54,188 bases of DNA from Oculina patagonica (GCF_052425735.1 NC_135770.1:21647813-21702000), one strand, 5' to 3'; shown: positions 24,801 to 53,914, numbered from the stretch's first letter. Numbers and translations are program-made. Notes: generated by a model not told the origin, from the letters alone.

Positions 24801-27800
24801 CCTTTTTTATGCAGACAAAAAAACATCGAAACTGGCTCGAAAGTAATAAAGTGTAATAAAAAGATACTAAAACGCTAAAAATGTATACAAGGTTACAAAC
24901 AATAGACGGAATCGGCTAATGTGTTAATGTATCCTTGTTTCCACCCAATTCATACGTACCACGTGATGGTTTTTTTAGGGAGGTTACAACTGTACAATTT
25001 CTTACACGAAGCTGAGTGTATGGGAATATGTACGAACAGAACAATTGTAATCTCCCAAATGAATCATCACATGATCTGTATTAACCTTAGCCGAATCTGT
25101 CTATGATGCCACCTTTGTAAACAGAAGCAACAGGCGAATGTTTTTCTTGGGAAACAGTTAAAAATATTGGAGGAGGGTTTTTTAAAACTTTCCGAGCCAA
25201 CGATCATTCTATAAAACACAGAGTCCGAATCTAATGATTGTTTTGTTATAAATTGTCACAAAGAAAAACGCGTTCAAAAACTTCGAATTCTGAGAAAAAC
25301 AAAATGACGCAATTGATGAAAATATTACATGAAAGATTATCTTGTCATGGATGTCAGTCATTCGAAGTGCTGATTATTGATTTGTGCTTACACATAAAAT
25401 TAGCATATGTGTTCAAACGCACTAAAATTAAAATTAACCTTTTCAATGATGTCATTTATAAATTTCAACGATTAAACAATAGAGGCTATTTCTGATCTAG
25501 TTCTGTCAGTATTTCAATACTGCTAATAAAAACTAGATTTATATTTAGTTCTTCTTTTCATTCGTCAAGAGTTTCATGAAAGTAAAACGAAAATTATTGC
25601 AGCCGTTCTTATCTTATTGACCCGCTTTAGAACGAAGAGAAAAGGGACTTTCCCTTTCGCAAATATTTTCAACCTTTATTTACTTTCTTAGAATCATGAA
25701 TATTTCATTTTTTCTAGACAAGCAAATGTTGTGATCGCGTGGCCTGATGTCGCCGTTTCGGTTTCACCGACGAAAATCGATTCTCTGTCTGTCTCTTAGC
25801 TTCGACTTAACTCTGTAGATTTTAAAAACGGAGCCTGAAACTTTGGCATGGGTTCAAAAGAATCACCTCATTCTTGTGGCACGAAGAAAGCCGCCGACAG
25901 AAGGAGGTCGAATTTTTTCTGGTATGCGATTGACTCACTTATTGCACATGGCCATCTTGTTTTATCAGCAAATGCTAAAAATATCCGATATCCTCCGAGG
26001 AAAATCTCGCTAATATGACATATACTAAAACCCGAAACAACGAAACGAAACCACCGAAAGGTCTGCAGTCTGCCTGCACACCGGTTAGCTTGAATATAAA
26101 CGCTTAGGTTTACGATGAGCTCTCGATTATGGTAATGAGTTTCGCTTGTCTCGGCCGTTTCGGTCGTTTTGGCGCGGATTTTGTTTTGGTGGCTTCGCTC
26201 GTTTCGGTGGTTCCGTTTCGTTGTTTCGGGTTATACTTTTAATACATGGCATGTAGTTCATGTCCACAAATATGAACTGTTGCAGGAACGAACGGCAAGA
26301 AACCGGAACGTACCATGCAGACAACTCAGAGAACTGAGCCGAGTCAGAATAAAACTGAGCCAAATCGGCAACCATGCAAAGAGACAACTATAAGTTGCTA
26401 TAAACGAGGAATTATTTTTATATGTACACAATGAATGACCTTCCGTCACAGTCCAGAGAGCCAGAATTATCGAACGAAACGGTTGAAGTTCTTCCATTAG
26501 AACCAAAAGCTGAAGGGCGGGAGCTTTGCAGCGATGTGAATACATTATTTACGTTTTCTCTCGACGAGTCAACCTCAGTAGTTGCGGAGGCGAAAATCGA
26601 CACAGAATCTAACACGTTGAACATCCTTCTCACGAACTGCAACCTCGTGACAGTCGGACGGTCAGACACCCAACAACTCAAATGTAATTGTCATTTACAA
26701 GAGGAGAACAAATGTGTTAGCAACAGTGACAATGAGGTTCGGTCAGACAGTGCATCGAAGACTGCAGATTCTGCAAATCGCAGCCTTGGAGGGCGTAAGC
26801 CAACAGAATACCAATTGCAGCATTTTAATGAAGCAGCAGAAGACTGCAAACCGGTTGACTCGGATGAGATAGTGGGGAGCGTCGAGCCATTGTTGCCTTT
26901 GATCAAAAAGCAAGGATATCTTAACGGATCACAATGTGAGAGAATCATGGAACAACTTGAGATTTTACAGGACAATGGAAAATTTGGAGAGCATGAGGGT
27001 CTTGTCACATCATATCTCTGTCGTTGTGGGGAAGAAAAGAATTCTGACTTGGAATTGGCATTAAGAATTGAGCGCGGAGTGGCATTTTCTTATCACAAAG
27101 AGTTCAAAAACAGCAAGCGTATGTTCACCTCAGTCATAAAATCAGACAAAGAGCTTAGAAATCCGAATATTTTAATTGCAAGAGCGTACTTTTTACTTGT
27201 CGCTGACTATAGAAGTAAAAAGGTCATAAAACTCTCCCCGCTCTTTGAATTTCTTAGACGCAGCGAGTTTTTACTTCAAAACCACGACTCGCCAGAGGAC
27301 TGGGCCGAATTGTATTACAACTACGGCTCTGTATGGTTGGTTTACATGAGCATGATCCCGGATGATGAGAGGAATGCGCAAGCGCGAAACACTGCTCGGG
27401 GGAATGCAAGATACTACTATGAGCAGGCGATTTCTTTCTGCAAGAAAGATCCACGATTGAGAGTTCAAATAAAGAAGCAAACATACATTCATCTTAAACT
27501 GGCTGCACTACTACTCGACTGCAGTTCGAAAGCCGCCCGAACTCGTCAAAAAGTCATTCCACCAACTGACATCAAGGAGGCTAAAGAACATCTGGATTTC
27601 GTACAGTACAAACTTGGCGTTTGTTTACCGCTAGGTACTCGTGTGCAGCTTTTAAAAACTCGTTCGGATCAATTTTATCGTCAGGAAATATTTCAGCTAG
27701 CCAAAGAAACAGCCGAAGATGCGTTACAGATCGCTTTGTCCAACGAATTTTACACCGAAATAGACACTCTACGGGAAAGAATTGACTTTCTTGACAAATT

Positions 27801-30800
27801 GTGTGAGGAAGGAATCAAAGTGATTGCTATAAAAGAAATCTCAAGTTCCAGCAGTGAAATATGTTGTAGCGAATCTGCAGAATCTGAGTAGGAGATTAAA
27901 AAGATAAATCAGAATTTAATTAGTGGATAAGATTTATTTAAATTTTGCGAGAAATAAATCACCCACAAGAAATACTTCAAGAAATTCTCGGGAGTATTTC
28001 CAAAGAATTCCTGTGAAATTCGGCACACACTTTCACGTTATAATAAAAAGACAACAACTTAGTTGCTCTCCCTCTCCTCTCTCCCTTTCTCTACATTTCT
28101 CTTTTCCCTCTTTATGGTCTGGATTTTTTTGGCAAATTTTGGAAATAATCTGTATTCCAATTTGGTAAAAAAAAAAAAACCCTCAAGATAAAGACATTAA
28201 ACAAAAGATGTGATCAAGAAGACAGGCGGCGTGGCCAAGTGTTTTAGCTTGATAGCGCTGAATTTAAAATCAGTCTCCATCTTGCCATTATCTGAATATT
28301 TCCCTCTGTAGTAACTGATATACTAAAGCTCACATTTTATTCGATGGTTTTACTGATTATACGCGTGGATAGTTAACGAGTTTCGTCGTATTTTTCCGAG
28401 CCCGCAGTGGCAAGGAAAAATGCTCCAAAATGAAGCACGACAGTGTAATACGGAATAGTTATTTAGCAGAGGGCATGTACTAAGTCACGCCATTCAGAAC
28501 GTTCTTGGGCTAATCCAGCAATCTTTTGCCAATCCGACAGAATTTGGCGCTGTTCCCACCATCGGTCGAATAATAATGTTAGTATGTATAAAGCAAAAAT
28601 AAGCCGACATAAATTTTCATTTATACGTTTAATTCAATTCCTGCAGATGTATCGTTATATCTAAGCTTAGAAGATCAACAATATTAAAAAGACATATTTC
28701 AGCATAGCTATAATTCTATGAATTATTAAAACGGAAGTGGTTTCAATAGTGAAACTGATGTATCTGTCACACTGGCGCACCCTTGGAAAAGGGACTTTCC
28801 CTTACAAAACTTTCGAAACTTTTTTTCACTTATGAGATTAATTTACATAATAAAAATATAAAACATGAATATATTATTTTCTCTGCGTGCACATTTTCTC
28901 AACGTTTTTCTCGACGTTTTGCATCTACAAGAAGGCAGCTTGACAAGCAGCTAGAAGAAGATATTCGAAACACGCGTTTTAATAGTAGTCGTGAAGAAAT
29001 TTTAGTCGACAAATGCATGCAAAACAATTTGGCCTCAATTCAAAACAATAACACGAATGCTTAAAATAGAATATGAATGGCATCAAAGAGGCACTAGTCT
29101 TCGCACGATCACAAACAGCGATGGCGGACCTTGCCAGACAGAACGTACTACACGTCCACAAATATGATCTGTTGCAGGAATAAACGGCAAGAAACAGGAA
29201 CGGATCTTACGGACAACTGAACAACCAAACAAACAACCACAAGTTGTTAAAAACAAGGTGTTATCTTCATGTGTACACAATGACAAACCTTCCCCCACAG
29301 TCCGGAGAGCAATATTCATCGAACGAAACGGTTGAAGTTCTTCCAAGAGAGCCTATAAAAGCTGAAGGGCAAGAGTCTCGCAGCCATGTGAACACATTAT
29401 TTACGTTTCTTCTCGACGGTCCAGCCTCAGTTACTGCTGAAGCAAAACTCGACACAGAATCTAACACGCTGAACATCCTTGTCACGAACTGCAATCTCGT
29501 CACAGTTGGACAGTCAAATCCTCAACAACTCAAATATAATTGTTGTTTACAAGAGGAACACAAATGTGTTAGCAACATTGACAATGAGGTTCGGTCAGAC
29601 AGTGCTCCGAAGACTGCAGATTCCGCAGATCGCAGCCTTGGGGGACGTTTAAATCAAGCAGCACAAGACTGCAAACCGGTTGACTCGGATGAGATAGTGG
29701 TGAGCGTCGAGCCATTGTTGCCTTTGATCAAAAAGCAAGGATATCTTAACGGATTACAATGTGAGAGAATCATGGAACAACTTGAGATTTTACAGGACAA
29801 TGGAAAGTTTGCAGAGCATGAAGGTCTTGTCAAGTCATATCTCCATCGTTGTGGGGAAGAAAAGAATTCTGACTTAGAAATGGCATTAAAAATAGAGCGC
29901 GGAGTGGCATTTTCTTATCACAAAGAGTTCAAAAACAGCAAGCGTATGTTCACCTCGGTCATAAAATCAGACAAAGAGCTCAGAAATCCGAATATTTTGG
30001 TTGCAAGAGCGTACTTTTTACTTGTGGCTGACTATAGAAATAAGAAGGTCGTTAAACTCTCTCCGCTCTTTGAATTTCTTAGACGGAGCGAGTTTTTCCT
30101 TCAAAACCACGAGTCGCCAGAGGACTGGGCCGAGTTGTATTACAACTATGGCTCTGTTTGGCGGGTTTACATGAGCATGATCCCGGATGATGAAAGGAAT
30201 GCGCAAGCGCGAAACACTGCCAGAGGAAATGCAAGATACTATTATGAGCAGGCAATTTCTTTCTGCAAGAAAGATCCACGATTGAGAGTTCAGATAAAGA
30301 AACAAACATACATTCATCTTAAACTGGCTGCACTACTACTCGACTGCAGTTCGACAGCCGCCCGAACTCGTCAAAAACTTATTACACCTGTTGACATCAA
30401 AGAGGCAAAAGATCATCTGGATTTTGTACAGTACAAACTTGGCGTTTGTTTGCCGTTAGGCACACGTGTGCAGCTTTTAAAAACTCGCTCGGATCAATTT
30501 TATCGTCAGCAAATATACCAGCTAGCCAAAGAAACAGCCGAAGAAGCGTTACAGATCGCTTTGTCCAACGAATTTTACACCGACATAGACCCCCTACGGG
30601 AAAGAATTGACTTTCTTGACAAACTGTGTGAGGAAAGAATCAGAGTGATTGCTATAAAAGAAATCTCAAGTTCCAGCAGTGAAATATGTTGCAGCGAATC
30701 TGCAGAATCCGAGTAGGAGATCAAAAAAAATAAATCAGAATTTAATTAGTGGATAAGATTTCTTTAAATTTTGCAAGAAATAAATCACCCAGAAGAAATA

Positions 30801-33800
30801 CTTCAAGGAATTCTCGGGAAGTCAAATGAATTATCGAGAATTCTCGTGAAAATTTTCAAAGAATTCCTGTGAAATTCGGCACACACTTTCACGTTATAAT
30901 AAAGAGACAACAACTTAGTTGCCCTCCCTGTCTTCCTTTCCTTTTTGCCCCGTCTCCCTTAAGTACCCTTTCTCTACATTTCTCTTTCCCCTCTTTACGG
31001 TCCGGATTTTTTGGTAAATTTTGAAAATAATGCGTATCCCAATTTGATAAAAAAAATCCCTTAAGATAGCGACATTAAACAAAAGATGTGATCCAAGTAG
31101 AGAGGCGGCGTGGCCTAGTGTTTCAGCTTGATGGCACTGAATATAAACTCTGTGGGTCCCTTGTTCATAGTCTCCATGCTGCCATTATCTGAATATTTCC
31201 CTCCTCAGTAACTGAAATACTTACAGCTTATTCGATGGTTTAACAGATAATACGCTTGGATATTTTACGAGATGAGAAATATTTTTCCGAGCCCGCAGGG
31301 GCAAGGGAAAATGCTCCAAAATGGGGCACTACAGTGTATTAATACGGAATGCTGTCTTAGCCACGTAGATCCTTGAAGAAGCAGAGGGCATGCACAAAGT
31401 CACGCCATTCAGTGATCTCGGGCTGATCTAGCAATCCTTTGCCATCCAACCGAATTTGGCGCAGTTCCCACCATCAGTCAAATAATAATGTTACAAGTAT
31501 GTGTAAAGCGAAACTAATAAGCCGGCATAAAGTTTCATTTATGTTTAATTCAATTCCTGCAGCTGTGTCGTTCAGCTTCTCTTAAATAAAAGGCAAAGAT
31601 CAAACCCAATAAAAAGACATATTTCAGTATAACTTTTATTCTGTGACTTATTTATCATTCTTCAACAGTTTGAAACAATGCAAACGGAAGTGGCTTGCAG
31701 AAGTGAAACTGATGTATCCGTCGCTCTAGCGCACCCCTGTAGTAGGGACTTCCCCTTACAAAACTTTCAAAACATTTTTCATACAGATATTATTATAAAA
31801 CATGAATATCTTATTTTCGCTGCGTGCAAGGTTTCTCGAATGTTCTCTAGATAGCCATGTTTTGCTTCTACTAGGAAAGAAGCTCTGTGTACAGCGAATA
31901 CCGAAGAAATTCGAAACACACGTTTTAGAAGTCGTGAGAGATTTTTCGGCGACGAAATGTATGCAAAACACTTTGGCTTCAATTCAAAACAATTACAGGG
32001 CGCCAAATAGAACACTGTCCTACTGAATCCATTAAGTTGACACAATGAGGAATAGTTCTGAACAGCGAGGCGAAGCTCCAAGACGAGCGAAACGAAGATT
32101 CATCCGTACGCGGAACTGAAGTATCTTTAAAGCAACCCATGCCTGAAGGGCAACCAGGTGGTTTCAACGGCGTGTTATTCAAGCTTTCTCCAGACGAATC
32201 GAACTCGATAATCGCGGAAGCAAACCTTGACGCACAAACAAAGACGTTGAACATAATTCTCAGGGAATGGAACGCCGTTTTAGTCGGCAACTCAAAAGCC
32301 GGACAAGTTGAGAATAATTGTCATTTGGATAACAAACAAAGTCCACAGCAAAAACTACAAAAACGTTCCTTCGAAGATGACCTTCAGGCTGACAGCGGTA
32401 CAAAAGAACAGTATTGCAGTGAACAACAAAAGACAATAATAAAAGAAGACGAATACCAACTGCAGCCTTTTAATGAGGCAAACACGCTCTGCAAACAGGC
32501 TCCGCCGCTTGAAGTTGTCGTGGATGTCGAGCCACAGTTACCTTTGATCAAAATACAAGGATATCTAAACGGACCACAATGCGAGGAAATCATGGAACAG
32601 CTTCAAGGTCTACAAGACGATGGAGAGTTTGAAAAACATGAATGTTTGGTTACTTCGTACCTAGACACTTTTGCTTTCAAAAACAATACTGACATGGCAT
32701 TAGCCTTGAAAATTGAGCTCGGAGTCGCTTGTTCATACCACAAAGATTTCAAACACAGCAAACGCCTTTTTACATCAGTAATAAACTATGATCGCATTTC
32801 TCAGCTAAGAAATGCAAACATTTTACTAGCCAGAGCCTACTATCGACTCGTACAAGACTTTAGATATCGAAAAAATAGGAAACTGTCCTCTCTTTTTCAC
32901 TGCATGGAAAAAAGTGAGTTTTTACTGCAAAACCACGACTCGCCGGAGGACTGGGCCGAGGTGTATTACAACTATGGCTCACTTTGGTTAGCGTATATGA
33001 GCATCATTCCGGATGACGAGAGAAATGCGCAGGCGCGAGACGACGCCAGGAGAAAGGCGAAAAATTACTTCGAAATGTCAATTGAATCCTGTAAAAAAGA
33101 TCCTCGATTGAGAGTGCAGATTAAAAAACAGATATACGGTCACCTTCGAGTCGCTGCGGTGTTACTTGACTGCACCTCAACTGTCGCCCGAATTCGAAGA
33201 AAAGTCATTTCCCAACAAGATATTGAAGATGCGAGAAAACACCTTAATATTTTGGAGCACCAACTTAGCAGCAACATTCCTCGAGGTACACGCGTGCAGA
33301 TTTTAAAAATGCGTTCTGATCAATACTATCGCCAAGGACCAGCAATGTATCAACTGGCCAAAGAAACTGCTCAGGAAGCTTTTAGAATTGCACTATGTCA
33401 TGGATTTAACACTGAACTGGAATCGCTTCAAGAGCGAATTGATTTTCTCGATCAGTTGTGCGAAGAAGCAGTGTGCAAAGAAAGGATAACGGTGCTCGTT
33501 GATAGTGATAGTGAAACTTCTGGTAACGACGCCAGCTGTGAAACAAGCGGCAGTGAAAACTGAAAAAAAAAATGTAAAAAAAGCCAGACCCCAGTTGCTA
33601 AAGAGACTTCAAACTGTCCATAAACATAAACTACAGTTGAACCTCGCTAATTCGAACTCGGTTATTTCGAATTCCCCGTTAATTCGAACTAAAACCCGTT
33701 TCCCTTGGATTTGCCCTTCAGTCATTTACTATCGGCTATTTCGAACTCCCGCTATTTCGAACTATTTCGAACTCCCGCTATTTCGAACTATTTTTTGTTT

Positions 33801-36800
33801 CCCCTGACGGTTCGAAATAGCGGGGTTCAACTGTAATTCTATACTATTACAATTTAATGTAAGCTGGAAAGGGAATAATAAAATTACAATTCCAAGAATC
33901 GAAAGTGTTCTGCAAAAAAAATTTGAATGGTATTCATAATTCGTTAAGGGACTTTCCCTTTTACCAACTGAAGTTATTACAGTTTTATTCTTAATATTTA
34001 ATGCCTCGGATAGCAATATATTCTCCAAGATTTCTCACAACTGGTTTGATTGCGTCTTCGGCGTCGCTTTCGTTTATGCTGTTTTTTTACATGTTCACTA
34101 TGAATTACTTTTGCCAGGCTGAGTTTGTCACTTTTTGATGTGTAGGCGAGTCTCTTTTTACAATTGTTTTACTAGCATAATCGCTTCAGTCTCTTATCCA
34201 GCTTTCCTTGGAAAGTTGCGCCAAACGTGTTTCAAAACAATTTTTGTGTGACGCGGGTGAGGTTGAATTTCGTAATCCAGATCTCTAAATGAAACATCAC
34301 AGGAATTCAACAACTGAGTTCTAAATACATACACTAATGCCCTTGGCTACAACCTTTTTTTTCTTTAATCAGTCAATGAGCTTAAATTATTTTGTAGGTC
34401 TAGAGGCGACCCTTTCCAAATATTGGAAGATCATAAAAAACACAACCACAATTTCTTTTCCCAAGAATCGGGAAACAAGATGCAAAAAGATGCTATAAAT
34501 ATGTTAAAAGCTGATGTTGCAACATAATTTTAAGAAAGGTCTTATTTCATTTTCTTTTTTTATGTATCAGTCAATTCCAAGCGAGATCACCCCCCCCCCC
34601 CCCCCAACCCCCTGGCATTTGACCGCTACTGAAGCCCAGATAGTAAGGAATTTGATCGAACAGAAGCCCGGATGGTCGGGCATTTGACCGAATGACCGAC
34701 ATTGACAATGAGGTTCGGTCAGACAGTGCTCCGAAGACTGCAGATTCCGCAGATCGCAGCCTTGGGGGACGTTTAAATCAAGCAGCACAAGACTGCAAAC
34801 CGGTTGACTCGGATGAGATAGTGGTGAGCGTCGAGCCATTGTTGCCTTTGATCAAAAAGCAAGGATATCTTAACGGATTACAATGTGAGAGAATCATGGA
34901 ACAACTTGAGATTTTACAGGACAATGGAAAGTTTGCAGAGCATGAAGGTCTTGTCAGGTCATATCTCCATCGTTGTGGGGAAGAAAAGAATTTTGACTTA
35001 GAAATGGCATTAAAAATAGAGCGCGGAGTGGCATTTTCTTATCACAAAGAGTTCAAAAACAGCAAGCGTATGTTCACCTCGGTCATAAAATCAGACAAAG
35101 AGCTCAGAAATCCGAATATTTTGGTTGCAAGAGCGTACTTTTTACTTGTGGCTGACTATAGAAATAAGAAGGTCGTTAAACTCTCTCCGCTCTTTGAATT
35201 TCTTAGACGGAGCGAGTTTTTCCTTCAAAACCACGAGTCGCCAGAGGACTGGGCCGAGTTGTATTACAACTATGGCTCTGTTTGGCGGGTTTACATGAGC
35301 GTGATCCCGGATGATGAAAGGAATGCGCAAGCGCGAAACACTGCCAGGGGAAATGCAAGATACTATTATGAGCAGGCAATTTCTTTCTGCAAGAAAGATC
35401 CACGATTGAGAGTTCAGATAAAGAAACAAACATACATTCATCTTAAACTGGCTGCACTACTACTCGACTGCAGTTCGACAGCCGCCCGAACTCGTCAAAA
35501 ACTTATTACACCTGTTGACATCAAGGAGGCTAAAGAACATCTGGATTTCGTACAGTACAAACTTGGCGTTTGTTTGCCGTTAGGCACACGTGTGCAGCTT
35601 TTAAAAACTCGCTCGGATCAATTTTATCGTCAGCAAATATACCAACTAGCCAAAGAAACAGCCGAAGAAGCGTTACAGATTGCTTTGTCCAACGAATTTT
35701 ACACCGACATAGACCCCCTACGGGAAAGAATTGATTTTCTTGACAAACTGTGTGAGAAAAGAATCAAAGTGATTGCTATAAAAGAAATCTCAAGTTCCAG
35801 CAGTGAAATATGTTGCAGCGAATCTGCAGAATCCGAGTAGGAGATCAAAAAAGATAAATCAGAATTTAATTAGTGGATAAGATTTATTTAAATTTTGCAA
35901 GAAATAAATCACCCAGAAGAAATACTTCAAGGAATTCTCGGGAAGTCAAATGAATTATCGAGAATTCTCGTGAAAATTTTCAAAGAATTCCTGTGAAATT
36001 CGGCACACACTTTCACGTTATAATAAAGAGACAACAACTTAGTTGCCCTCCCTGTCTTCCTTTCCTTTTTGCCCCGTCTCCCTTAAGTACCCTTTCTCTA
36101 CATTTCTCTTTCCCCTCTTTACGGTCCGGATTTTTTGGTAAATTTTGAAAATAATGCGTATCCCAATTTGATAAAAAAAATCCCTTAAGATAGCGACATT
36201 AAACAAAAGATGTGATCCAAGTAGAGAGGCGGCGTGGCCTAGTGTTTCAGCTTGATGGCACTGAATATAAACTCTGTGGGTCCCTTGTTCATAGTCTCCA
36301 TGCTGCCATTATCTGAATATTTCCCTCCTCAGTAACTGAAATACTTACAGCTTATTCGATGGTTTAACAGATAATACGCTTGGATATTTTACGAGATGAG
36401 AAATATTTTTCCGAGCCCGCAGGGGCAAGGGAAAATGCTCCAAAATGGGGCACTACAGTGTATTAATACGGAATGCTGTCTTAGCCACGTAGATCCTTGA
36501 AGAAGCAGAGGGCATGCACAAAGTCACGCCATTCAGTGATCTCGGGCTGATCTAGCAATCCTTTGCCATCCAACCGAATTTGGCGCAGTTCCCACCATCA
36601 GTCAAATAATAATGTTACAAGTATGTGTAAAGCGAAACTAATAAGCCGGCATAAAGTTTCATTTATGTTTAATTCAATTCCTGCAGCTGTGTCGTTCAGC
36701 TTCTCTTAAATAAAAGGCAAAGATCAACAACAATAAAAAGACATATTTCAGTATAACTTTTATTCTGTGACTTATTTATCATTCTTCAACAGTTTGAAAC

Positions 36801-39800
36801 AATGCAAACGGAAGTGGCTTGCAGAAGTGAAACTGATGTATCCGTCGCTCTAGCGCACCCCTGTAGTAGGGACTTCCCCTTACAAAACTTTCAAAACATT
36901 TTTCATACAGATATTATTATAAAACATGAATATCTTATTTTCGCTGCGTGCAAGGTTTCTCGAATGTTCTCTAGATAGCCATGTTTTGCTTCTACTAGGA
37001 AAGAAGCTCTGTGTACAGCGAATACCGAAGAAATTCGAAACACACGTTTTAGAAGTCGTGAGAGATTTTTCGGCGACGAAATGTATGCAAAACACTTTGG
37101 CTTCAATTCAAAACAATTACACGGGCGCCTAAAATAGAACACTGTCCTACTGAATCCAGTAAGTTGACATCAATGAGGCATTATAGTTCGCATGAACAGC
37201 GATGGCGAAGCTTCCAAGACCGAGCGAAACGAAGATTTCATCCGTACGCGGAACTGAAGTATCTTTAAAGCAACCCATGCCTGAAGGGCAACCATGTGGT
37301 TTCAACGGCGTGTTATTCAAGCTTTCTCCAGACGAATCGAACTCGATAATCGCGGAAGCAAACCTTGACGCACAAACAAAGACGTTGAACATAATTCTCA
37401 GGGAATGGAACGCCGTTTTAGTCGGCAACTCAAAAGCCGAACAAGTTAAGAATAATTGTCATTTGGATAACAAACAAAGTCCACAGCAAAAACTACAAAA
37501 ACGTTCCTTCGAAGATGACCTTCAGGCTGACAGCGGTCCAAAAGAACAGTATTGCATTGAACAACAAAAGACAATAATAAAAGAAGACGAATACCAACTG
37601 CAGCCTTTAAATGAGGCAAACACGCTCTGCAAACAGGCTCCGCCGAGTGAAGTTGTCGTGGATGTCGAGCCACAGTTACCTTTGATCAAAATACAAGGAT
37701 ATCTTAACGGACCGGAATGCGAGCACATCATGGAACAACTTCAAAGTCTACTAGACGATGGAGAGTTTGAAAAACATGAATGTTTGGTTACTTCGTACCT
37801 AAACACTTTTGTTTTCAAAAACAATACTGACATGGCATTAGCCTTGAAAATTGAGCGCGGAGTCGCTTGTTCATACCACAAAGATTTCAAACACAGCAAA
37901 CGCCTTTTTACATCAGTAATAAACTATGATAGCATTTCTCAGCTAAGAAATGCAAACATATTACTAGCCAGAGCCTACTATCGACTCGTACAAGACTTTA
38001 GATATCGAAAAAATAGGAAACTGTCCGCTCTTTTTCACTGCATGGAAAAAAGTGAGTTTTTACTGCAAAACCACGACTCGCCGGAGGACTGGGCCGAGGT
38101 GTATTACAACTATGGCTCACTTTGGTTAGCGTATATGAGCATCATCCCGGATGATGAAAGAAATGCGCAGGCGCGAGACGACGCCAGGAGAAAGGCGAGA
38201 TATTACTTCGAAATGACAATTGAATCCTGCAAGAAAGATCCCCGATTGAGAGTGCAGATAAAATTACAGACTTTTGGTCACCTACGAGTGGCCGCTGTGT
38301 TACTTGACTGCACCTCAACTGTCGCCCGAATTCGAAGAAAACTGATTCCCCAACAAGATATTGAAGATGCGAGAAGGCATCTAGATATTTTGGAGCACCA
38401 TCTAAGCAGCAACATTCCTCGAGGTACACGCGTACAGATTTTGAAAGCGCGTTCTGATCAATACTATCGCCAAGGACCAGGCATGTATCAACTGGCCAAA
38501 GAAACTGCTCAGGAAGCTTTGAGAATTGCACGTTGCCGTGGATTTAACACTGAACTGGAATCGCTTCAAGAGCGAATCGATTTTCTCGATCAGTTGTGCG
38601 AAGAAGCAGTGTGCAAAGAAAGAATTACATTGCTTGTTGATAGTGAAACTTCTGGTAACGACGCCAGCTGCGAAACAAGCGGCAGTGAAACTGAAAAGAA
38701 ATAAAAATGCCACACTCCAGGGTTTTTTTTATACCATCAATGAAAGTAACAGTTTGCTAAAGAGACTTCAAAGTGTCCAAAAACATTCAATAATTCTATA
38801 CTATTACCATTTAATGTTAGCTGGAAAGGACAATAATTTAATCACAATTCATAATTAATTTAGGGACTTTCCCTGTAACCCAAGTCAGTCACGGCTGGCT
38901 GAAAATATTCAAACAAATAAAGTTTTTGAATATGATTCATAATTAATTCAGGGCTTTCTCTTTTACCCAAGTCAGTCACCGCTGGCTATTTTGTTGAACC
39001 TTTTTTGAAATATTCAAACAAATAAAGTTTTTGAATATGATTCATAATTAATTCAGGGCTTTCTCTTTTACCCAAGTCAGTCACCGCTGGCTATTTTGTT
39101 GAACCTTTTTTGAAATATTCAAACAAATAAAGTTTTTGAATATGATTCATAATTAATTCAGGGACTTTCTCTTTTACCCAAGTCAGTCACGGCTGGCTAT
39201 TTTGTTGATCCTTTATTCATTTATTCAAGAAAATGTCAAAACATAATATCATACTTCCCACCCCTTGCCTCCAGCTTTCCCTGCCCCCCACCCCCCTATC
39301 ACCCCACCCTACCGAACACACTCCCCTAATTTCCAATTACTACTAGTTCTATGACTTATTTATTCCGAAAGTGGTTTTAAGTGGTGAAACTGATGTATCT
39401 GTCACACTGGCGCACACTTGGAAAAGGGACTTTCCCTTACAAAACTTTCGAAACCTTTTTTCACTTATGAGATTAATTTGCATTATACAGATATAAAACA
39501 TGAATATATTATTTTCTCTGCATGCACATTTTCTCAATTAAGTTTTCTCTGGATAGCGACGTTTTGCTTCTACTAAAAAAGCAGTTCTGCGTACGGCGAA
39601 AAAGAAATTGGATTAAGAAATTAAACCCACGTTTTAGAAGTCGTGAAGGATTTTTCGTCGACAAATGTATGCAAAACACTTTGGCTTCAATTCAAAACAA
39701 TTACACGGACACTTAAAATAGAATACTGTACGATCGAATTGAGTTAGTTGACATCAAAGAGGCATAAGTCTTCGCACGAACAGCGATGGAAAACCTCCCA

Positions 39801-42800
39801 AGACAGAGCGAAACGAAGATTTCATACGACCGCGAAACTGAAGCACCTTTAAACCAATCCCAGCCCGAAGGACAACAAACTTGCAGTGGTCTCGTATTCA
39901 AGTTTTCTCCAGACGATTCAGCGTCGATAATCGCTGAGGCAAACCTTGACGCACAAACAAGTACGTTGAACATAATTTTCAAGAAGTGGAACACCGTATT
40001 AGTTGGCAACTCAAACGCTGGACAAGTTGACTGTAATTGTCATTTTGACAACAAGCAGAGTCCACAGCAAAAACGTTCCTTCGACAAAGAAATTCAGTCA
40101 GACAGCGGTCCAAAGGAAGAGTATTGTGAACAACAGAAGACAATAACAAAAGACGAAGAATACCAACTGCAGCCTTTTTTGAATGAGGCAAACAGGCTCT
40201 GTAAAGAGGCTCCACCAGATGAAATTGTTGTTGATGTCGAGCCACAGTTACCTTTAATCAAAATACAAGGATATCTCAACGGATCGCATTGCGAGCAAAT
40301 CGCTGAACAACTTGAAGGTCTACAAGACGATGGACAGTTTGATAAACATGATCGTTTGGTTACTTCGTACTTGAACCATTCATCGTGCAAAGACATGGAA
40401 TTAAGCTTAAAAATTGAGCGCGGCGTGGCCTTTTCTTACCAGAAAAAATTCAAACAGAGCAAACGCGTTTTTACATCAGTAAAAAACTTTGATACCATCT
40501 CTCAGGTAAGAAATGCAAACATTTTACTAGCCAGAGCCTACTATCGACTCGTACAAGACTTTAGATATCGAAAAAATAAGAAACTATCCGCTCTTTTTTA
40601 CTGCATGGAAAAAAGTGAGTTTTTACTGCAAAACCACGACTCGCCGGAGGACTGGGCCGAAGTGTATTACAACTATGGCTCACTTTGGTTAGCGTATATG
40701 AGCATCATTCCGGATGACGAGAGAAATGCGCAGGCGCGAGACGACGCCAGGAGAAAGGCGAGATATTACTTCGAAATGTCAATTGAATCCTGTAAAAAAG
40801 ATCCTCGATTGAGAGTGCAGATTAAAAAACAGATATACGGTCACCTTCGAGTCGCTGCAGTGTTACTTGACTGCACCTCAACTGTCGCCCGAATTCGAAG
40901 AAAAGTCATTCCTCAGCAAGATATTGAAGATGCGAGAAAACACCTTAATATTTTGGAGCACCGACTTAGCAGCAACATTCCTCGAGGTACACACGTACAG
41001 ATTTTGAAAACGCGTTCTGACCAATACTATCGCCAAGGACCAGGCATGTATCAACTGGCCAAAGAAACTGCTCAGGAAGCTTTGAGAATTGCACGTTGCC
41101 ATGGATTTAACACTGAACTGGAATCGCTTCAAGAGCGAATCGATTTTCTTGATCAGTTGTGCGAAGAAGCAGTGTGCAAAGAAAGGATAACGGTGCTCGT
41201 TGATGGTGATGCTGAAACTTCTGGTAACGACGCCAGCTGTGAAACAAGCGGCAGTGAAAACTGAAAAAAAAAATGTAAAAAAAGCCAGACCCCAGTTGCT
41301 AAAGAGACTTCAAACTGTCCATAAACATAAACTAATTCTATACTATTACAATTTAATGTTAGCTGGAAAGGGAATAATAAAATTACAATTCCAAGAATCG
41401 AAAGTGTTCTGCAAAAAAAAATATGAATGGTATTCATAATTCATTAAGGGACTATCCCTTTTACCAAATAATAATAATAATAATAATTACGAATTTGTTG
41501 TGCGCAAATTCCATACGTAAATGTTCAAATGCGCATTACAAAAAAACAAAAAGTTAAAATTACAGCTTAAAAATTAAAATTCTTAAAAACTAAGTTATAG
41601 GTTGAAAATTACAACTGAAGTTATTACACCCCTCAGTAACAGATCCAGTGGAATCTTAATCCTCGCCGGGTTTGTTAGGGGAAAAAATCACTGGGTTGGC
41701 CAAATTTCCACTGGGTCGGCTTATTTTCGACTAGGTTTTTGTAATAGGTTTATTCCATGAGGGACTCCTGGTTTATTCGCGTACGATAAAAACATGGGCA
41801 ATTGTGGAGAATGCGGGGTTTTCTATTACTTTTTTCCGCCCGCAAAGAGGCTGCTTTATAGTGACTAAACTGAAGTGAGAAAAGAAGAGTGTTGCAAGCA
41901 GTAGCGTAGCGAGGATTTTTTCAGAGGTACGCACAGTTTTTAAAATCATCCTCTACTGCACCCCGCCCCCTTCAAATCTGGACGCTATTGCTTTGCAGTA
42001 TTTTCTTTATCATCAGCCTAATGACACCATGTTGTATACTGAAGGCCTGTAGGAACGAATTTGAACCGAGGGCCCCAAAGTTTGCATTGTGATGAGATAT
42101 TATGGGCCGAAAGGCTTGTCGATGTCCGGGGGGGGGGGGCATCATCCCCTGGGAATATTTAAAAATTTTGATACGTTCTATAAATGCCATTCGTCGCATT
42201 GAGCAACCCCTATCGAAGTGCTTTTTCTTGACAATTTCGCTCCCGAATGGCTTTCCGTTCCGGAACTAGAACTGCTGGTAGAACTTTCTATAGCTTTCGA
42301 CTTTTGTAGAAACTGTTGTTTTTTTGTTGGTTTATTCGTTTTCAAAAATACGCTGGGGTTTTCAATTCACACTGCACAGTCACTGCACAGTCGCTGGGTA
42401 CTGGGGAGGCTAAATTTTCACTGGGAAGGGGAAAAATCCACTGAGTCGGGTTCCGCTGGGTCTGTTACAAAGGGGTGTTTTATTCTTATTATTTAATGAC
42501 TCGGATAGCAATATATTCTCCAAGATTTCTCACAAGTGGTTTGATTGCGTCTTCGGCGTCGCTTTCGTTTATGCTGTTTTTTTACATGTTCACTATGAAT
42601 TACTTTCACCAGCCTGAGTTTGTCACTTTTTGATGTGTAGGCGAGTCTCTTTTTACAATTGTTTTATTAGCATAATCGCTTCAGTCTCTTATCCAGCTTT
42701 CCTTGGAAAGTTGCGCCAAACGTGTTTCAAAACAATTTTTGTGTGACGCGGGTGAGGCTGAATTTCTGAATCCAGATCTCTAAATGAAACATCACAGGAA

Positions 42801-45800
42801 TTCAACAACTGAGTTCTAAATACATACACTAATGCCCTTGGCTACAACCTGATTTGACTTGTAATCAGTCAATGAGCTTAAATTATTTGTAGGTCTAGAG
42901 GCGACCCTTTCCAAATATTGGAAGATAATAAAAACACAACCACAATTTCTTTTCCCAAGAATCGGTAAAAAAAAAAGATGCAAAAAGATGCTATAAATAT
43001 GTTAAAAGCTGATGTTGCAACATAATTAAGTTAAGAAAGGTCTTATTTCATTTTCTTTTTTTATGTATCAGTCAATTCCAAGCGAGATCATCCCCCCCGG
43101 CCAACCCCCGGGCATTTGATCGCTACTGAAGCCCAGATAGTGGGGAATTTGATCGAACAGAAGCCCGGATGGTTGGACATTTGACCGAATAACCGTTGTC
43201 ACAAAATGTGTTATTAACTATTTAAAGCGCTAGCGAGCTCAAGCGCGTGAAGTTAGTATTTGGTTACGTTAATGTAAAGTACCTAGTTTCAACGTACCGT
43301 ATTTTCTCGATTAAACGCCCACGGCGTTTATTTCAAACTTGGCCCGATAGGGCCGGCGTTTATTTGAATTCAGGAGTTTTTTCAAGCCCTATGTTTCTAA
43401 GAAACGATTTTTATTCATTATTTTTGGCAGCTTTATAATTAGACATTGTTTTAAAATCATATTAAACCTTTAAAAATTGTTTAAGGGGTTTATTTTCAAA
43501 TACAACTTGGAGACCCGGCGTTTATTCGGGGCCCGGCGTTTAATCGAGAAAATACGGTATCTATCTTTTCCTATTAAAATTGGCTGATAAATAGGGCAGG
43601 AGTGTCCGTTTAGACCAAGTGTTAACGATAAGGTAACTGGTTGTTAGCGAATCCGCTCGTACTCGTAGGCAAAACGACTGCAATTCAACGAGAAAACCGA
43701 CTCACAATGACATTTCAGCCCCGACTGGTGGGGCATTTGACCATGCAACTGGCCCACATAGTGGGGAATTTGAACAGACATTTTGAAAAAAGACAAATGC
43801 CCGGGGGTTTGCCCGGGGGGGGGGGATGATCTCGCTTGGAATTGACTGACACATTTTACGTAAGGTTTCAATGGTCTGACCTCTTTCAATAAGGTATGAA
43901 ATTACTTGGGACCCAGCGCGGTTTAGTAATGAACTTTTTCAGCAATCAACATTTTACTTCCAATCTACAACAGTTTCAAAAAAGAAAAGCGGAGTTTATG
44001 GTAGAATTAGAAAAATAATGCCGATAACTCTTTCATACACTGAAGCGGAAAAGCGGCGTTTTACCTTTCAGAGCTTTCGAAACCTTTGTTTACTTGTTTG
44101 TTTTTTGTAGCTCGACTTACATGCAAATATCAATCATAAATATTTCAATCAGTTCTCTGCGTGCAAGTTTTCATGTAAGAAGCTCTGGCTTGAATTCAAA
44201 ACATTCCTCGGGGTATTAAAGTATGTTAACAAGTATCCGATGTCCTCGGAGATGATCTGGCAACACAGGCGCCTGAACTAGAACAAAACTGAACCGAATC
44301 GCGAACCAAAGATAGCCTGTGTACAGCCGTCCCACACAGGCTAACCAAAGGCAACTGAGCTGACAACAAAGACTGGTACTGTATCTTCATACATGAACCT
44401 TCAACGCAGACCGGAATGGAGGTTTCATCCGACCGCGGAACAGAGGTAACTTTAGAGCAACCCAAAACTGAAGGACAGCAATCTTCCAGCGATCTCAACA
44501 CCGCGTTATTTACGTTTCCTCTCAACGATTCTTCCTCGATAATTGCCGAAGCAAACCTCGACGCACAAACAAAGACGTTGAACGTGACTCTAAGAAACTG
44601 GAACGCAGTTTTAGTCGGCCACTCAAACAATGAACTTGACTGTATTCCTCATTTGCATCTAGACCATAAGCAAAATGCACCGCACAAATGTTTCAACGAA
44701 ACCCTTCAGGCTGACAGCGGTCCAAAGAAAGAGTTTTGCAATGAACAACAAAAGACAATAATAAAAGATGAACAAGAATACCAACTGCAGCCTTTTAGTG
44801 GGGCAAATAGACTCTACAAACAGGCTCTGTCGGGAGAAATTGTTGTTGATGTTGAGCCACAGTTACCTTTGATCAAAATACAAGGATATCTCAACGGATC
44901 GCAATGCGAGGAAATCATGGAACAACTTGAACGTTTACAAGACGATGGACAGTTTGAAAAACATGATCATCTGGTTGCTTCGTACCTAAACCGTTTTGCG
45001 TGCAGAAACAATACTGATATGGCATTAGCCTTGAAAATTGAGCGCGGAGTGGCTTTCTCTTACCAAAAAGAACACAAACAAAGCAAGCGACTTTTGACCT
45101 CAGTAATAAAATCTGACACAATTTCTAAGCTTAGAAATCCAAACATTTTATTGGCAAGAGCCTACTGTCGACTCGTTCAAGACTACAGATATAGAAAAAG
45201 TACGAAACTATCCGCTCTTTTTCATTGGGTGAGAAAAAGCGAGTTATTATTGCAAAACCATGAATCGCCTGCGGATTGGTCTGAAGTGTATTACAACTAT
45301 GGCTCACTTTGGTTAGCGTATATGAGAAAGATCCCAGATGACGAGAGAAATTCGCAGGCGCGAGACGATGCTCTAAGAAAGGCGAGATATTACTTCGAAA
45401 TGACAATCGAATCAGGCAAGAAAGATCCCCGATTGAGAGTGCAAATTAATAAACAGATATATGGTCACCTACGAGTCGCTGCTGTGTTACTTGACTGCAC
45501 CTCAACTGTCGCCCGAATTCGAAGAAAAGTCCTTCCCCAACAAGATATTGAAGACGCGAGAAAACACCTGGATATTTTGGAGCACCAACTTAGCAGCAAC
45601 ATTCCTCGAGGTACACGCGTACAGATTTTGAAAGCGCGTTCTGATCAATACTATCGCCAAGGACCAGGCATGTATCAACTGGCCAAAGAAACTGCTCAGG
45701 AAGCTTTGAGAATTGCACGATGTTATGGATTTAACACTGAACTTGATTCGCTTCAAGAGCGAATCGATTTTCTCGATTAGTTGTGTGAAGAAGAAGTGTG

Positions 45801-48800: not shown

Positions 48801-51800
48801 GGGCTTCATTATCTTACTTTCTGCAGCAGAAAGAGAGATTTTCTTTGACTTCAGCAAGAGTTAACACACGGGAAAGTTTTAATCACATGGACATGACACA
48901 CCGCCAGACATATGTACCACACAACTACGTAAGGCGGGACAGTCGTCGAATAAAATTGAAGTTTTTCCACGGCAGCTGAAGACGGACGAACAAGAACCTT
49001 TCAGGTGCATGCCAACGTCATTCGAATTGCCTACTAACCATTCAAACACACCAACAGCAGTACCTGCAAAAACAAATGTGGACCCGCAGCAGAGTGCGTC
49101 CTACTTGCATTGCCGAAGCAACCTGGGACACGCTTAAAAACACGTTGACATTAACCTTGAAGGGCTGTTATGCAGTTGTTGTTGGCAAGTCAGCTACAGT
49201 ACAGTGTCAAAGTAACCGCTGTGATCTTTGTTCGCATGGAGGGCAAATCCAAAGCAGTTCTTTTGACGGCAAGAAAGTTCAAACCACCAGTGACTCCAAG
49301 ATAGTGGATAGTAGTATTGTAGAACGAACAGAAATGTCAGCAAAGTAAGATAGAAAACATAGTCATGAATGTGAAGAGTCTCAAAAGCAAACCCCGAGCG
49401 CTGAATCTCTAGGTTTGGATGCCGAACTATCGTTGCCTTTGATTAAGAAACAAGGATATCTTAAGGGATCACAATGCGAGCGAATCATGGAACAACTTGA
49501 GATTTTACAAGACAATGGAAAGTTTGAACAACATAAGCGTTTGGTCAATTCATACCTTAACCGTTGTGAAGACAGGAAAAGCACTAACATAGGATTAACA
49601 AGAGAAACCCAACAACATCTAAATGAAGAACACGGCGCCCAATGCGAACAAGTGCTGAAGAAACTTGAACTTCTACAGAACAAAGGAAAACTCAACAAAG
49701 ACGTCGAGCATTTGTTCTCTTTATACTCACGGCTATGTCGAGAAAGGGAAAATGCTGACATGGAAATATCCCTCGTAATCGAACAGGGGGTATCGTTCAT
49801 GTACCAGAAAGAATTCAAGAAGAGCAAGCTCTTTCTAACTTCAGTGATAGATTTCGGCAGCTATTGCCAGTTAAGAAACCCAGCCATTTTAATTGCGAGA
49901 GCGAATTTTCTGTTGGTGGAAAACCATACACATATGTATGACAAAGATAAGAAAATTCAGTTCCTATTAAAATGTCTGGAGCACAGCGAAGACTTGTTAC
50001 AACACCACGATTCACCAGAGGACTAGGCCGAGTTATATTACAATTATGGTTCAGATTGGTTGGCTATCATGAGTGCGATCCCGGATGACGAGAGGCGTGC
50101 GCAGGCGCGAAAGCACGCTCGAGAAAAAGCGAGATTTTACTACGAGCGAGCAATTGCTTTCTGCAAGAAGGATCCCAGATTGAGAGTTCAGATCAAGAAG
50201 CTGACATACTGCCACTTAGGAGCTGCAGCAGTACTTCTCGACTGCACATCAACTGCATCACGAACGCGGCGGCAGAAACACATCACTCTTAACGATGTCA
50301 AAGATGCGCAAAGCCATCTGGACTTTGTGGAGCGCGTACTGGGCAACAACCTCCCATTAGGATCACGCATGCACCTCTACAAGACGCGCTCCGATCAATA
50401 CCATCGTCAAGATTTCTATCAACTGGCTAAGGACACTGCCGAGAATGCGTTACAGATTGCTTCCATCAATGGATTTAAAACGGAACTAGTCACGCTACAA
50501 GAGCGAATCAATTTCCTACAGTAAATGTTTGGAAGAAGATATCCGCCTGATGGCGGATAACAGTGAGGACTCAAATTCTGACAACGATGCAAGTTCTGAA
50601 ACATCTTGCAGCTAAACAAACATCAAACTCGTTAGCTTCTTATAAAAACCCGTTGGGTGCAAAAACTGGAAAAATTATGCTCAAACACCAAGCGGGCACC
50701 CAACGAACTAATTTGTCAGAATTCATCAGGAACTACAGTGGCCATGAATAAGAGCAAACCAACCAATAAAAATTCTTAAAATAATTGTGAAAAAGAAAAG
50801 CGCCCCCAAAGGGAAACGTGGTTCCTTCCTTTTTTTAGGGGGGGGGGGACGGCCAGGGAAAAGCCCCACAGCAGAAGGAAACGGAACACACCCAGGCAGG
50901 AGGAACCCCCGCCCCGGAGCCCAGACCAGCCAGGAGCCGGAGCGAAAGGGGGCCGACGCGGCACGGAAGCCCGCCCCCACCCCCACCCTAGGGTGCCCCT
51001 AACTTCCTAACGTTAATTCGACAAAACAAAAAGATAAAATGTACTCACCAGCGGATCTTATGGCCAAATGACTTGTTAAGCTAGAGGCCCAAAACACAGG
51101 AACAATACCATCCATATCAGACGGATCTCCATATTCCGGTCGATTGATGTCTTTTATCCCAATAACAGATGGATCTCCAATGTGTATCGGTGCTCCATGC
51201 AGAGCTCCCAAACGCGAGGTAACAGCGACCGTCCTTTCCAACAGTTGTTTAGGAATCGGATGCATGCATACCACCAATGGACAGCTAAACGGTCCCGCCT
51301 CTTTAGCTTGGATGTTTGTCTTGTACTGGGAGACGGCACGTTTCTTGTCCGCGCTTTGCACGGGAATTTTAGCAGCCAGGAGCTCTTTCTCTATGTGGCT
51401 GCTTATAGAGCCGATATAAAATGTAACCATGTCATTCCAGGGGAACTGCTCGAGATCTGCTACACGGCTGTCGTGAAGGCCATTCTTCAGGACGAAGTAG
51501 GAAGGCAGGAGCGTTCTACAGAAGAGGTGATCACGGTTATCAAATTATAACAAGCTTCAGCAGGTACAGAGAATGGAGAGAGGACTTATTCACGACTTTC
51601 TCGGCCTAAGCGGCCCGTTGTTGCCAGCCACCATTAAACCATTCTGAGTCACGACTGACCGAAAATGCCCGGACTCTGGGGACGAGTTGAAGTCACGATA
51701 CTTTGTACGAGCGCGTCCACGCGGAGATCCCCCATTAGCTCCTCCCGCAAGGGACAGCTTGTTTATTTCATGCACGTTTGAGGGGAGGGGGTGGGGTGGC

Positions 51801-53396: not shown

Positions 53397-53560
53397 TTAG
53401 GACGCGAGTTGTTGTACGGACGGTGCATTTTATATTTATATTCTGTGTGGTCAGTGTTGGTTTGCGTGACAAACAACAGCAAAGTCACGTGAAGTCACGT
53501 GGAATGACAGTGTTTTGGTCACATGTCTGGCATACGTTGGCATGCGCACGTCACTGAATT
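53397..53560. promoter_or_regulatory. Compact bidirectional promoter with tandem E-boxes
   Basis: AAGTCACGTG AAGTCACGTG at 53482-53501, between the divergent DGLUCY-like start codons. Confidence 0.6.
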
Positions 53561-53648
53561 TGGTCACGAAAATATTGCTTCGTCTTTGCAGTCAGAGTTG
53601 AACCTGTTGCCAGTAATTTTCTGTTACAAGTTTTTTCCAACAAAGAGT

Positions 53649-53914
53649 ATGTCTTCGAAACGAAGTGAGCCCGTTGGTAAATGGACGCCATCAGAGGCAA
53701 GGTACGAATTTCGAACTAACCCAGATTTGGAGGGGTCATCGACTTCTGGATACTGTATGGGATATCTTCAAGCTAATTTAGCGATTCTTCCCTCTTCTCT
53801 GGCGGATGAATTTGAGCAGTTCTGCGAGTTAAACAAAGCTCCATGTCCGTTGCTCTACAGAAGCAAATGTGGTGAACTATCAGCTGGAATTCTGGCCCAG
53901 GAGTCTGATGTAAG
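53649..53914 (+). CDS. DGLUCY: D-glutamate cyclase-like paralog 2, first coding exon; gene runs off the right edge
   Basis: TPSEARYEFR...TSGYCMGYLQANLAILPSSLADEFEQFCELNKAPCPLL...SDVR with a phase-2 donor AG|GTACAT at the same position as in paralog 1; an alternative in-frame ATG is at 53523. Confidence 0.88.

Follow-up and report, generated by a model that had tools for sequence, protein, structure and literature searches.

Tandem TPR genes with a RHIM-like N-terminal motif and conserved kB sites, nested in a D-glutamate cyclase gene of the coral Oculina patagonica

The window analysed here, a stretch of 54,188 nucleotides from Oculina patagonica (GCF_052425735.1 NC_135770.1:21647813-21702000), holds eight paralogous open reading frames (ORFs) between 26.4 and 50.5 kb, all on the + strand. 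Five are intact (c1, c2, c3, c5 and c6) and three are damaged (c4, c7 and c8). Together they make up a tandem array of transcribed genes shaped by birth and death, in which c1, c2 and c5 show no intron, and the proteins combine a predicted TPR superhelix with an N-terminal motif that we interpret as a descendant of the RHIM. A first-pass annotation of this DNA had proposed eight paralogs with a common layout, and comparison of the copies bears out both the number and the layout: a variable N-terminus with one conserved beta-prone motif, an Asp-Ser site in the linker, a helical domain of ~330 residues and an acidic Ser-rich tail. The copies are as follows.

26422-27891, + strand: c1, 489 amino acids, intact, subfamily A (ORF call and RNA contigs)
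29280-30716, + strand: c2, intact, subfamily A (ORF call and RNA contigs); the mechanical ORF begins at TTG 29244, and the likely ATG is at 29280
32139-33563, + strand: c3, 474 amino acids, intact, subfamily B; starts at the Met equivalent to M26 of c5
34692-35840, + strand: c4, 382 amino acids, 5'-truncated, subfamily A, lacking the RHIM-like N-terminus; 98% identical to c2
37202-38704, + strand: c5, 500 amino acids, intact, subfamily B; the copy used for the structure model
39786-41264, + strand: c6, 492 amino acids, intact, subfamily B
44416-45780, with homology to 45891, + strand: c7, subfamily B; a single in-frame stop at 45778-45780 after ..RIDFLD
49076-50524, + strand: c8, pseudogene of a third subfamily; two in-frame stops, no tail

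The damaged copies differ in how they were altered. c4 begins just ahead of the linker Asp-Ser site, and the sequence upstream of it is an unrelated poly-C run followed by 32-bp repeats (ATTTGACCGAACAGAAGCCCAGATAGTAAGGA-like) that occupy 34590-34692 and abut the start of the copy; the repeats appear again at 43113-43189, ~1.2 kb upstream of c7. The element at c4 is probably the insertion or breakpoint that cost this copy its N-terminus. The stop in c7 removes the C-terminal tail, and the homology beyond it continues in frame. In c8 the first TPR repeat is duplicated internally (49415-49830), such that LPLIKKQGYL..LQDNGKF recurs as ..CEQVLKKLELLQNKGKL. The earlier classes of damage stand in that one copy is 5'-truncated, c7 is 3'-shortened and c8 is a pseudogene; the cause in the last two is nonsense codons, not deletion or frameshift. 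Pfam searches found no transposon domains in the window proteins.

The RNA evidence consists of unstranded assembler contigs from public RNA-labelled runs of two studies with coded treatments, from which induction is not measurable, and coverage was examined for c1, c2 and c5. Contigs span 26370-27921 for c1, with uncovered flanks, 29280-30831 for c2, and 37006-38900 for c5, with none at 36728-36941 or 38975-39081. Depth falls to zero in the spacers around all three copies, the ORFs and short untranslated regions (UTRs) are covered, and no splice joints are seen in these contigs. Coverage confined in this way, without splice joints, fits single-exon transcripts rather than DNA contamination or unspliced host pre-mRNA. 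Two short stretches, 26019-26059 (GAAAC-rich) and 36351-36379, reach word depths in the hundreds in every RNA run and have many loose ends, which makes them look like common short repeats and not like parts of family transcripts.

Pairwise Nei-Gojobori ratios of nonsynonymous to synonymous substitution (dN/dS) lie between 0.09 and 0.3 in the helical domain and between 0.4 and 0.66 over the first 148 residues, with a value of 0.26 for c1 against c2. The helical domain is under purifying selection. Transcription of the copies and dN/dS had both been proposed as checks on the annotation, and both are favorable to it: c1, c2 and c5 are transcribed, and dN/dS is below 1 in all intact-copy comparisons. 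Most copies belong to two old subfamilies, A (c1, c2 and c4) and B (c3, c5, c6 and c7), between which synonymous divergence is saturated. In a maximum-likelihood tree, subfamily A groups with a Desmophyllum protein and is sister to a Pocillopora clade, and subfamily B groups with other coral sequences. This placement indicates that the subfamilies are older than the genera and that the copies turn over by birth and death.

The proteins belong to no recognised named family, as the first-pass annotation had supposed. Pfam holds no family for the window proteins, giving only sub-threshold DUF matches, and a phmmer search with them against the PDB returns nothing relevant. There are ~140 close homologs, and all that carry names are scleractinian 'uncharacterized' proteins (Desmophyllum, Orbicella and Pocillopora). 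An exhaustive phmmer search yields 147 representatives at 50% identity, the distant ones sharing the helical domain alone at 23-30% identity, and the named ones among them belong to Stylophora, Oculina, the sea anemones Actinostola and Actinia, and Branchiostoma. Unnamed matches from the structure searches have accessions that we take to be probably octocoral, hydrozoan, annelid and mollusc. The best match by shape in the ESM Atlas is an unnamed mollusc family or cluster, and searching that atlas by features returns generic TPR clusters only. For the whole model, the best cluster representative in the AlphaFold Database is A0A210Q8E0 (876 amino acids, aligned over residues 395-876, E 1.6e-11), presumably a scallop protein from its accession; it bears the automatic name 'Caspase-2', and the putative caspase fusion is a lead only. 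Word-indexed homology searches with the relative P0153 and its TPR region, and with alignment A4, return almost only close relatives and no new domain architectures.

The helical domain was examined through an AlphaFold2 model of c5, built from a 109-sequence alignment (mean predicted local distance difference test score, pLDDT, of 78).

37709-38647, + strand: TPR superhelix of c5, residues 170-482, 14 helices, pLDDT >90

The model places ~7 repeats in one superhelix, preceded by a disordered segment at residues 72-145 (pLDDT <50). Foldseek matches it to LGN/Pins, kinesin light chain (KLC) and consensus-TPR (CTPR) structures in the PDB at a probability of 1.0 (E 3e-4 for LGN and KLC). In VIA-align comparisons, the Z scores are 23 for APPBP2, 22 for TSK, ~20 for the Rap proteins (Rap/NprR) and APC5, 18-19 for LGN, and 17 for IFIT1 and IFIT5, at rank ~41. 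Pfam TPR models do not match the window proteins; among relatives, TPR_12 is found in 16 of 85 and TPR_MalT in 9 of 85, and the family profile picks out TPR chains of the PDB by sequence, with E 5e-5 to 5e-4. On the strength of the model, the domain is a predicted TPR superhelix of the peptide-binding type. The TPR-like fold suggested earlier, and the AlphaFold and Foldseek check suggested with it, are confirmed to this extent.

N-terminal to the TPR domain lies the motif that the first-pass annotation had called RHIM-like.

37382-37432, + strand: putative RHIM-derived motif of c5, TLNIILREWNAVLVGNS, residues 61-77, tied by position to the VQVG/VQLG cores of relatives
26608-26670, + strand: the same motif in c1

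The window motif has the consensus T-L-N-I-x-L-x-x-x-N-x-V-(L/T)-V-G-x-S, and its Gly is the sole invariant position of the whole N-terminal region in the family alignment. At the aligned position, distant coral and probable cnidarian relatives with the same TPR domain have VQVG, VQLG, MQIG or TQIG cores followed by Asn, with matching flanks (..VNVRADHVQVGQNNTMIVNL in P0153, ..IENLFLVQVGESN in P0136, ..VQLG in P0138, ..IYNVTSVFTQIGRRN in P0166 and ..ARIMQIGRRN in the Oculina protein P0175). Three relatives have two motifs per protein, as in ZBP1. Regular-expression counts were made on 80 representatives (50% identity) with at least 60 residues ahead of the TPR domain and compared with 500 shuffles. 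The pattern [IV]Q[IVL]G is present in the N-terminal regions of 8 of the 80 (0.8 expected, shuffle maximum 4), and [IVL]x[IVL]GxxN in 25 (1.7 expected, shuffle maximum 6). The family-wide motif profile also aligns with the human RIPK3 RHIM, whose sequence was verified in PDB 7dac, with the tetrads in register and an hhalign probability of 89% (P 2e-6). The score of 20.6 lies above both the mean (6.6) and the maximum (13.5) of the shuffles, and none of 300 shuffled targets reaches it.

Two further observations bear on the origin of this region. A Branchiostoma relative, P0247 (XP_078572111.1), has a Pfam Death domain at residues 99-169 (40.9 bits) in the slot of the motif; in amphioxus RHIM proteins, the RHIM occupies the usual place of death-fold domains (Kajava et al. 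2014, PMC4262963). In the tree, the clade whose motif lacks the core Gln (38 rows, support 100/99) is nested among clades that have it, suggesting that the window motif is a derived RHIM in which the Gln was lost secondarily. We conclude that the window motif is probably a RHIM descendant without the core Gln, with a putative capacity to form amyloid.

The remaining two parts of the layout, the linker site and the tail, are represented by c5.

37520-37546, + strand: linker motif of c5, L-Q-A-D-S-G-P-K (psi-x-x-D|S-x-P-K), caspase-type by pattern only, in a stretch with pLDDT <50
38612-38701, + strand: C-terminal tail of c5, a hydrophobic core, ITLLVD, followed by a Ser/acidic cluster; SUMO-interaction motif-like or CK2-type by pattern only

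The position of the linker site is conserved across three subclades, with the variants LQADSGPK, VRSDSAS, VQSDSAPK and IRSDSGP, and the site is absent from other subclades. The extended motif occurs in 9 of 33 clade members; a bare caspase tetrapeptide is not enriched in the linker (13 of 33, 7.3 expected, shuffle maximum 15). Cleavage by a caspase would be a reasonable hypothesis for this site, not a finding. The last 30 residues of each intact copy have a hydrophobic run (ITLLVD or IKVIAIKEI) followed by Ser, Asp and Glu, a pattern shared by 26 of 33 clade members. We take this tail to resemble phospho-regulated SUMO-interaction motifs or a CK2 phospho-cluster.

The array had also been described as studded with kB sites. 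The window contains 14 matches to GGGRNWYYCC where 2.3 are expected, a number reached in none of 100 shuffles, and 10 of the 14 are GGGACTTYCC on the gene strand, inside or adjoining the array. The description stands with one correction: the sites form two distinct conserved modules, a promoter module (class A) and an intergenic element (class B).

36809-36924, + strand: class A promoter module of c5, with CGGAAGTG, AGTGAAAC, the kB site GGGACTTCCC (36869-36878) and TATAAAA (36918-36924)
38863-39228, + strand: class B intergenic element, with the kB site GGGACTTTCC (38863-38872) followed by 105-bp tandem copies

The order of elements in class A is CGGAAGTG, AGTGAAAC, ~30 nt, the kB site, ACTTTCGAAA and then TATAAAA or CATGAATAT, and equivalent kB sites lie at 25644, 28791, 31745 and 39426. 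With the TATA box of c5 at 36918-36924 and its first RNA contig beginning at 37006, the kB site of this copy would lie ~75 bp upstream of the inferred start of transcription. Class B has the core ..TTCAGGGACTTTCCCTTTTACCAAAGTC.., and its other kB sites are at 33948, 46458, 46565 and 47493. The 105-bp tandem repeat at 38903-39228 (3.1 copies, 96% matches) is derived from class B, with the kB 10-mer decayed to GGGCTTTCTC.

Both classes recur in sense orientation beside family genes of other corals, including Desmophyllum, Orbicella and Pocillopora, and the class A module stands upstream of family genes in four other loci (L001, L002, L004 and L008). Across 107 kb of sequence at loci of at least four other corals, GGGACTTYCC occurs 14 times (0.32 expected, maximum 3 in 100 shuffles), so that conservation of the kB sites beside family genes holds in other coral genera as well. 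Because the proteins of these species are only 40-55% identical, a 10-mer that stays invariant in non-coding DNA points to constraint. Canonical kB sites are known targets of cnidarian NF-kB proteins (PMC5700166). A consensus kB site is a part of the inferred proximal promoter that is conserved across species. We considered class B as a dispersed transposon or satellite and rejected this, since each of the 6 exact matches to class B in JGI metagenome contigs falls in a spacer of tandem family genes.

The first-pass annotation had gone further and assigned ETS and IRF elements to an 'enhanceosome', a part of the proposal that lacks statistical support. The ETS site CGGAAGTG shows no enrichment, with 3 matches where 1.05 are expected and 11 of 100 shuffles reaching 3. 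The IRF-like pattern is enriched (28 against 12), many of the matches being the reverse strand of the kB flank or lying outside the array. An IRF-like GAAGTGAAAC stands beside the kB site in some copies; this element is common to the L001 contig but not to Pocillopora, which has TGACGTAA.

The setting of the array is itself conserved. Two exons of a D-glutamate cyclase gene flank it on the opposite strand.

50999-51430, - strand: host exon, D-glutamate cyclase domain (PF07286, E 4.8e-41)
23748-24725, - strand: host exon, GLUCM-like C-terminal domain of D-glutamate cyclase (PF14336, E 5.1e-33)

As the array lies antisense between these two exons, the intron-nesting that had been proposed for it is real. 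The same nesting is seen in another coral contig (L001) and in Pocillopora verrucosa (L005), where an annotated D-glutamate cyclase gene of 619 amino acids spans two family genes. Further along the window, head-to-head ORFs at 53097-53396 (- strand) and 53523-53933 (+ strand) have a common N-terminal D-glutamate-cyclase-like sequence (..FCELNK..CPLLYRSK..), which suggests a second, divergently oriented cyclase paralog; in L001, likewise, a D-Glu_cyclase gene on the + strand accompanies the minus-strand one. An exon-like ORF at 174-623 (- strand) encodes FG-GAP/VCBS repeats (PF13517, E 2e-13) and belongs to an unrelated neighbouring gene.

The reading that we favor, and which we hold to be slightly more probable than not, is that these are NF-kB-target genes for RHIM-derived adaptors or modulators. 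On this reading each intact gene encodes a RHIM-descended N-terminal beta-strand, a disordered linker of ~80 residues, a seven-repeat TPR superhelix of the peptide-binding type and a tail that is first hydrophobic and then acidic and Ser-rich. The compact TATA promoter with its kB site, joined in many copies by a second kB-bearing element in the spacer, would place the genes under NF-kB, activation of which would induce the family proteins. The TPR domain could then dock a conserved host peptide partner, and the RHIM-derived strand could join, extend or cap amyloid-type beta-sheet assemblies nucleated by canonical RHIM proteins, including the coral paralogs with a canonical RHIM and the TPR domain. 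The outcome would be a set of inducible adaptors or modulators of a death or immune signalosome. As to the direction of the effect, we lean slightly toward feedback modulation, by analogy with Drosophila Pirk, because the promoter appears kB-driven and the tetrad is degenerate.

Several observations weigh against this proposal. The RHIM core tetrad is (I/V)-Q-(I/V/L/C)-G, and the window copies lack its defining Gln: their tetrads are VLVG (c3, c5, c6 and c7), VTVG (c1 and c2) and VVVG (c8), none of which is (I/V)Q(I/V/L)G. The motif segments of alignment A3 were anchored by eye, and the regular-expression counts given above were made to offset the bias that this brings. The scleractinian clade that includes the window copies, taken alone against RIPK3, has an hhalign score of 12.9 (P 0.006), which is within the range of the shuffles. 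The Pfam RHIM hidden Markov model (PF12721) matches neither the window N-termini nor the eight relatives with canonical cores in hmmscan at E up to 10, a search in which the HMMER filters are weak for motifs of ~20 residues. A HMMER motif profile retrieves no RIPK chains from the PDB, nor does the motif of a canonical relative. Residues 38-67, just upstream of the motif, form a small three-stranded beta-sheet in the AlphaFold2 model (pLDDT ~80), so that the motif could belong to a small domain as its edge strand. Purifying selection as strong as that on the TPR domain speaks against direct sensing of pathogen ligands and, together with the faster N-terminal change, points to a conserved endogenous partner instead. 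With regard to the control of these candidate NF-kB targets, every kB copy in the window goes back to duplication, and GGGACTTYCC contains a GGAA core that other factors could use. Our literature searches, by gene identifiers and by RHIM in corals and cnidarians, turned up no publication that treats the family or its genes. The RHIM-like label thus survives for the family, through the canonical cores of relatives and the profile match to RIPK3; for the window copies themselves the resemblance is weak.

Much of this could also be expected of a TPR scaffold with a small N-terminal beta domain that takes no part in amyloid or RHIM signalling. The V-x-V-G tetrad would then be an ordinary strand or a homo-oligomerisation element, the role of the proteins would be non-immune (proteostasis, trafficking or stress), and the protein that binds GGGACTTYCC would be some other factor, or else NF-kB serving a developmental or symbiosis programme. 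The sheet adjoining the motif, the missing Gln and Pfam match, the constraint on the TPR domain and the generic nature of the best structural matches (APPBP2, APC5 and LGN) are all as such a scaffold would have them. We nevertheless judge it unlikely, if the most serious of the rivals, because the relatives show a strong enrichment of canonical RHIM cores, flanks included, at the homologous position, a Death domain takes the same slot in one of them, and a lineage-specific expansion with pseudogenes and kB sites shared across genera is typical of inducible defence genes, not of housekeeping genes.

Two other explanations carry far less weight with us. The proteins could be IFIT-like nucleic-acid sensors whose TPR domain binds foreign RNA, making the array a cnidarian counterpart of the vertebrate IFIT cluster. 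The genes are clustered, with no intron in the checked copies, their promoters look inducible and in some cases have the IRF-like element by the kB site, and IFIT1 and IFIT5 are among the structural matches. That placing is below many unrelated TPR proteins, however, Pfam and PDB searches give no sequence similarity to IFITs, and the ~7 repeats form one superhelix without the multi-subdomain IFIT pocket; ETS sites are not enriched, and the IRF-like sites of the array are duplication copies. We reject a specific kinship with IFITs, leaving the earlier comparison valid for the organisation of clustered compact genes only, and consider RNA sensing of this kind very improbable. Still more improbable is a decaying or selfish duplicated segment without function for the organism and transcribed only within the host intron. 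Damage to 3 of 8 copies, the intronic position and the unstranded RNA contigs are compatible with it, but dN/dS is well below 1 between intact copies, RNA is confined to ORFs and short UTRs with empty spacers, unlike unspliced host pre-mRNA, and the family, its promoter module and its nesting are conserved across coral genera with no transposon domains found.

Vertebrate necroptosis and NF-kB pathways are known to use RHIM signalling, as is the insect IMD pathway; in amphioxus it is known by motif. Compared with the vertebrate RHIM proteins (RIPK1, RIPK3, TRIF and ZBP1) and the invertebrate RHIMs of Kajava et al. 2014 (PMC4262963), the coral family is alike in having a short beta-arch motif, hydrophobic-x-hydrophobic ... 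(V/I)-Q-(V/I/L)-G-x-x-N, ahead of a folded domain, in the occasional doubling of the motif and in its exchange with a Death domain in paralogs. It may also be alike in the setting of the motif, a stretch that could be disordered, and in the profile of the family as a whole, which matches RIPK3. It differs in lacking a kinase, TIR or Z-alpha domain, the partner being a previously unnamed TPR-type domain, and, in the window clade, in the replacement of the core Gln by L, T or V and the absence of a Pfam RHIM match.

A further parallel may be found in Drosophila, where the work of Kleino et al. in 2017 reportedly concerns cRHIM proteins of the IMD pathway (PGRP-LC/LE and IMD) and the Relish-induced inhibitor Pirk. 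A divergent RHIM-like motif with a non-canonical core is common to both systems, and the coral family could be the counterpart of an NF-kB-induced amyloid modulator acting within an NF-kB pathway. Caspase cleavage of the IMD linker would likewise parallel the coral psi-x-x-D-S-x-P-K pattern, although cutting at the coral site would detach the motif from the TPR domain and would not expose a tested IAP-binding end. There is no sequence homology outside the motif, and the coral family has neither a PGRP nor a death domain.

Other systems resemble the coral proteins in one part or another. Peptide-binding TPR scaffolds (APPBP2, LGN/Pins, kinesin light chain and Rap/NprR) have a similar superhelix of ~7 repeats, with VIA Z scores of 18-23 and a Foldseek probability of 1.0, but sequence identity is 8-14% and the window proteins have no Pfam TPR match. 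Vertebrate IFIT clusters share the tandem arrangement of compact TPR genes (no intron seen in three copies here) and the inducible-looking promoters; they are not the nearest fold, have no sequence relationship to the coral family, lack a RHIM and are controlled mainly by the interferon-stimulated response element rather than kB. The amyloid-signalling NLRs of fungi and bacteria (HET-s/NWD2 type, amyloid motif - NACHT - TPR/WD) also combine an N-terminal amyloid-type motif with a C-terminal TPR region, but the coral proteins have no intervening NTPase (NACHT/NB-ARC), and no adjacent effector gene with a matching motif was found in the window.

What we rate as new here is a putative adaptor of RHIM type whose scaffold is an unnamed TPR domain family, whose motif is derived, and whose kB promoters and nested locus are conserved. 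This combination suggests RHIM-style signalling in immunity or cell death in cnidarians. Cnidarians had no RIPK1 homolog in a 2025 survey (PMC12119088), and the RHIM proteins noted from invertebrates in 2014 were mainly those of amphioxus (PMC4262963). More tentatively, and with rather less confidence than we attach to the reading of the array itself, we propose that cnidarians, molluscs, annelids and amphioxus have a RIP-kinase-independent form of RHIM-based functional-amyloid signalling with the RHIM-TPR family at its core. One stony-coral branch would have lost the Gln, expanded into kB-driven arrays and come to act as inducible modulators.

The family defines a new TPR-type domain in which the N-terminal slot is taken by a RHIM or, in one amphioxus relative, by a Death domain. 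Its conserved kB promoter could serve as a reporter of NF-kB activity in corals, where NF-kB has been implicated in symbiosis and bleaching (PMC5700166), and opens the question of how coral NF-kB acts on its targets. If the proposal is true, innate immune or cell-death signalling that is templated by amyloid and linked to NF-kB would be older than the split between cnidarians and bilaterians, and the family, once confirmed, would offer an entry point to the question of whether amyloid-type signalling is ancestral to animal innate immunity.

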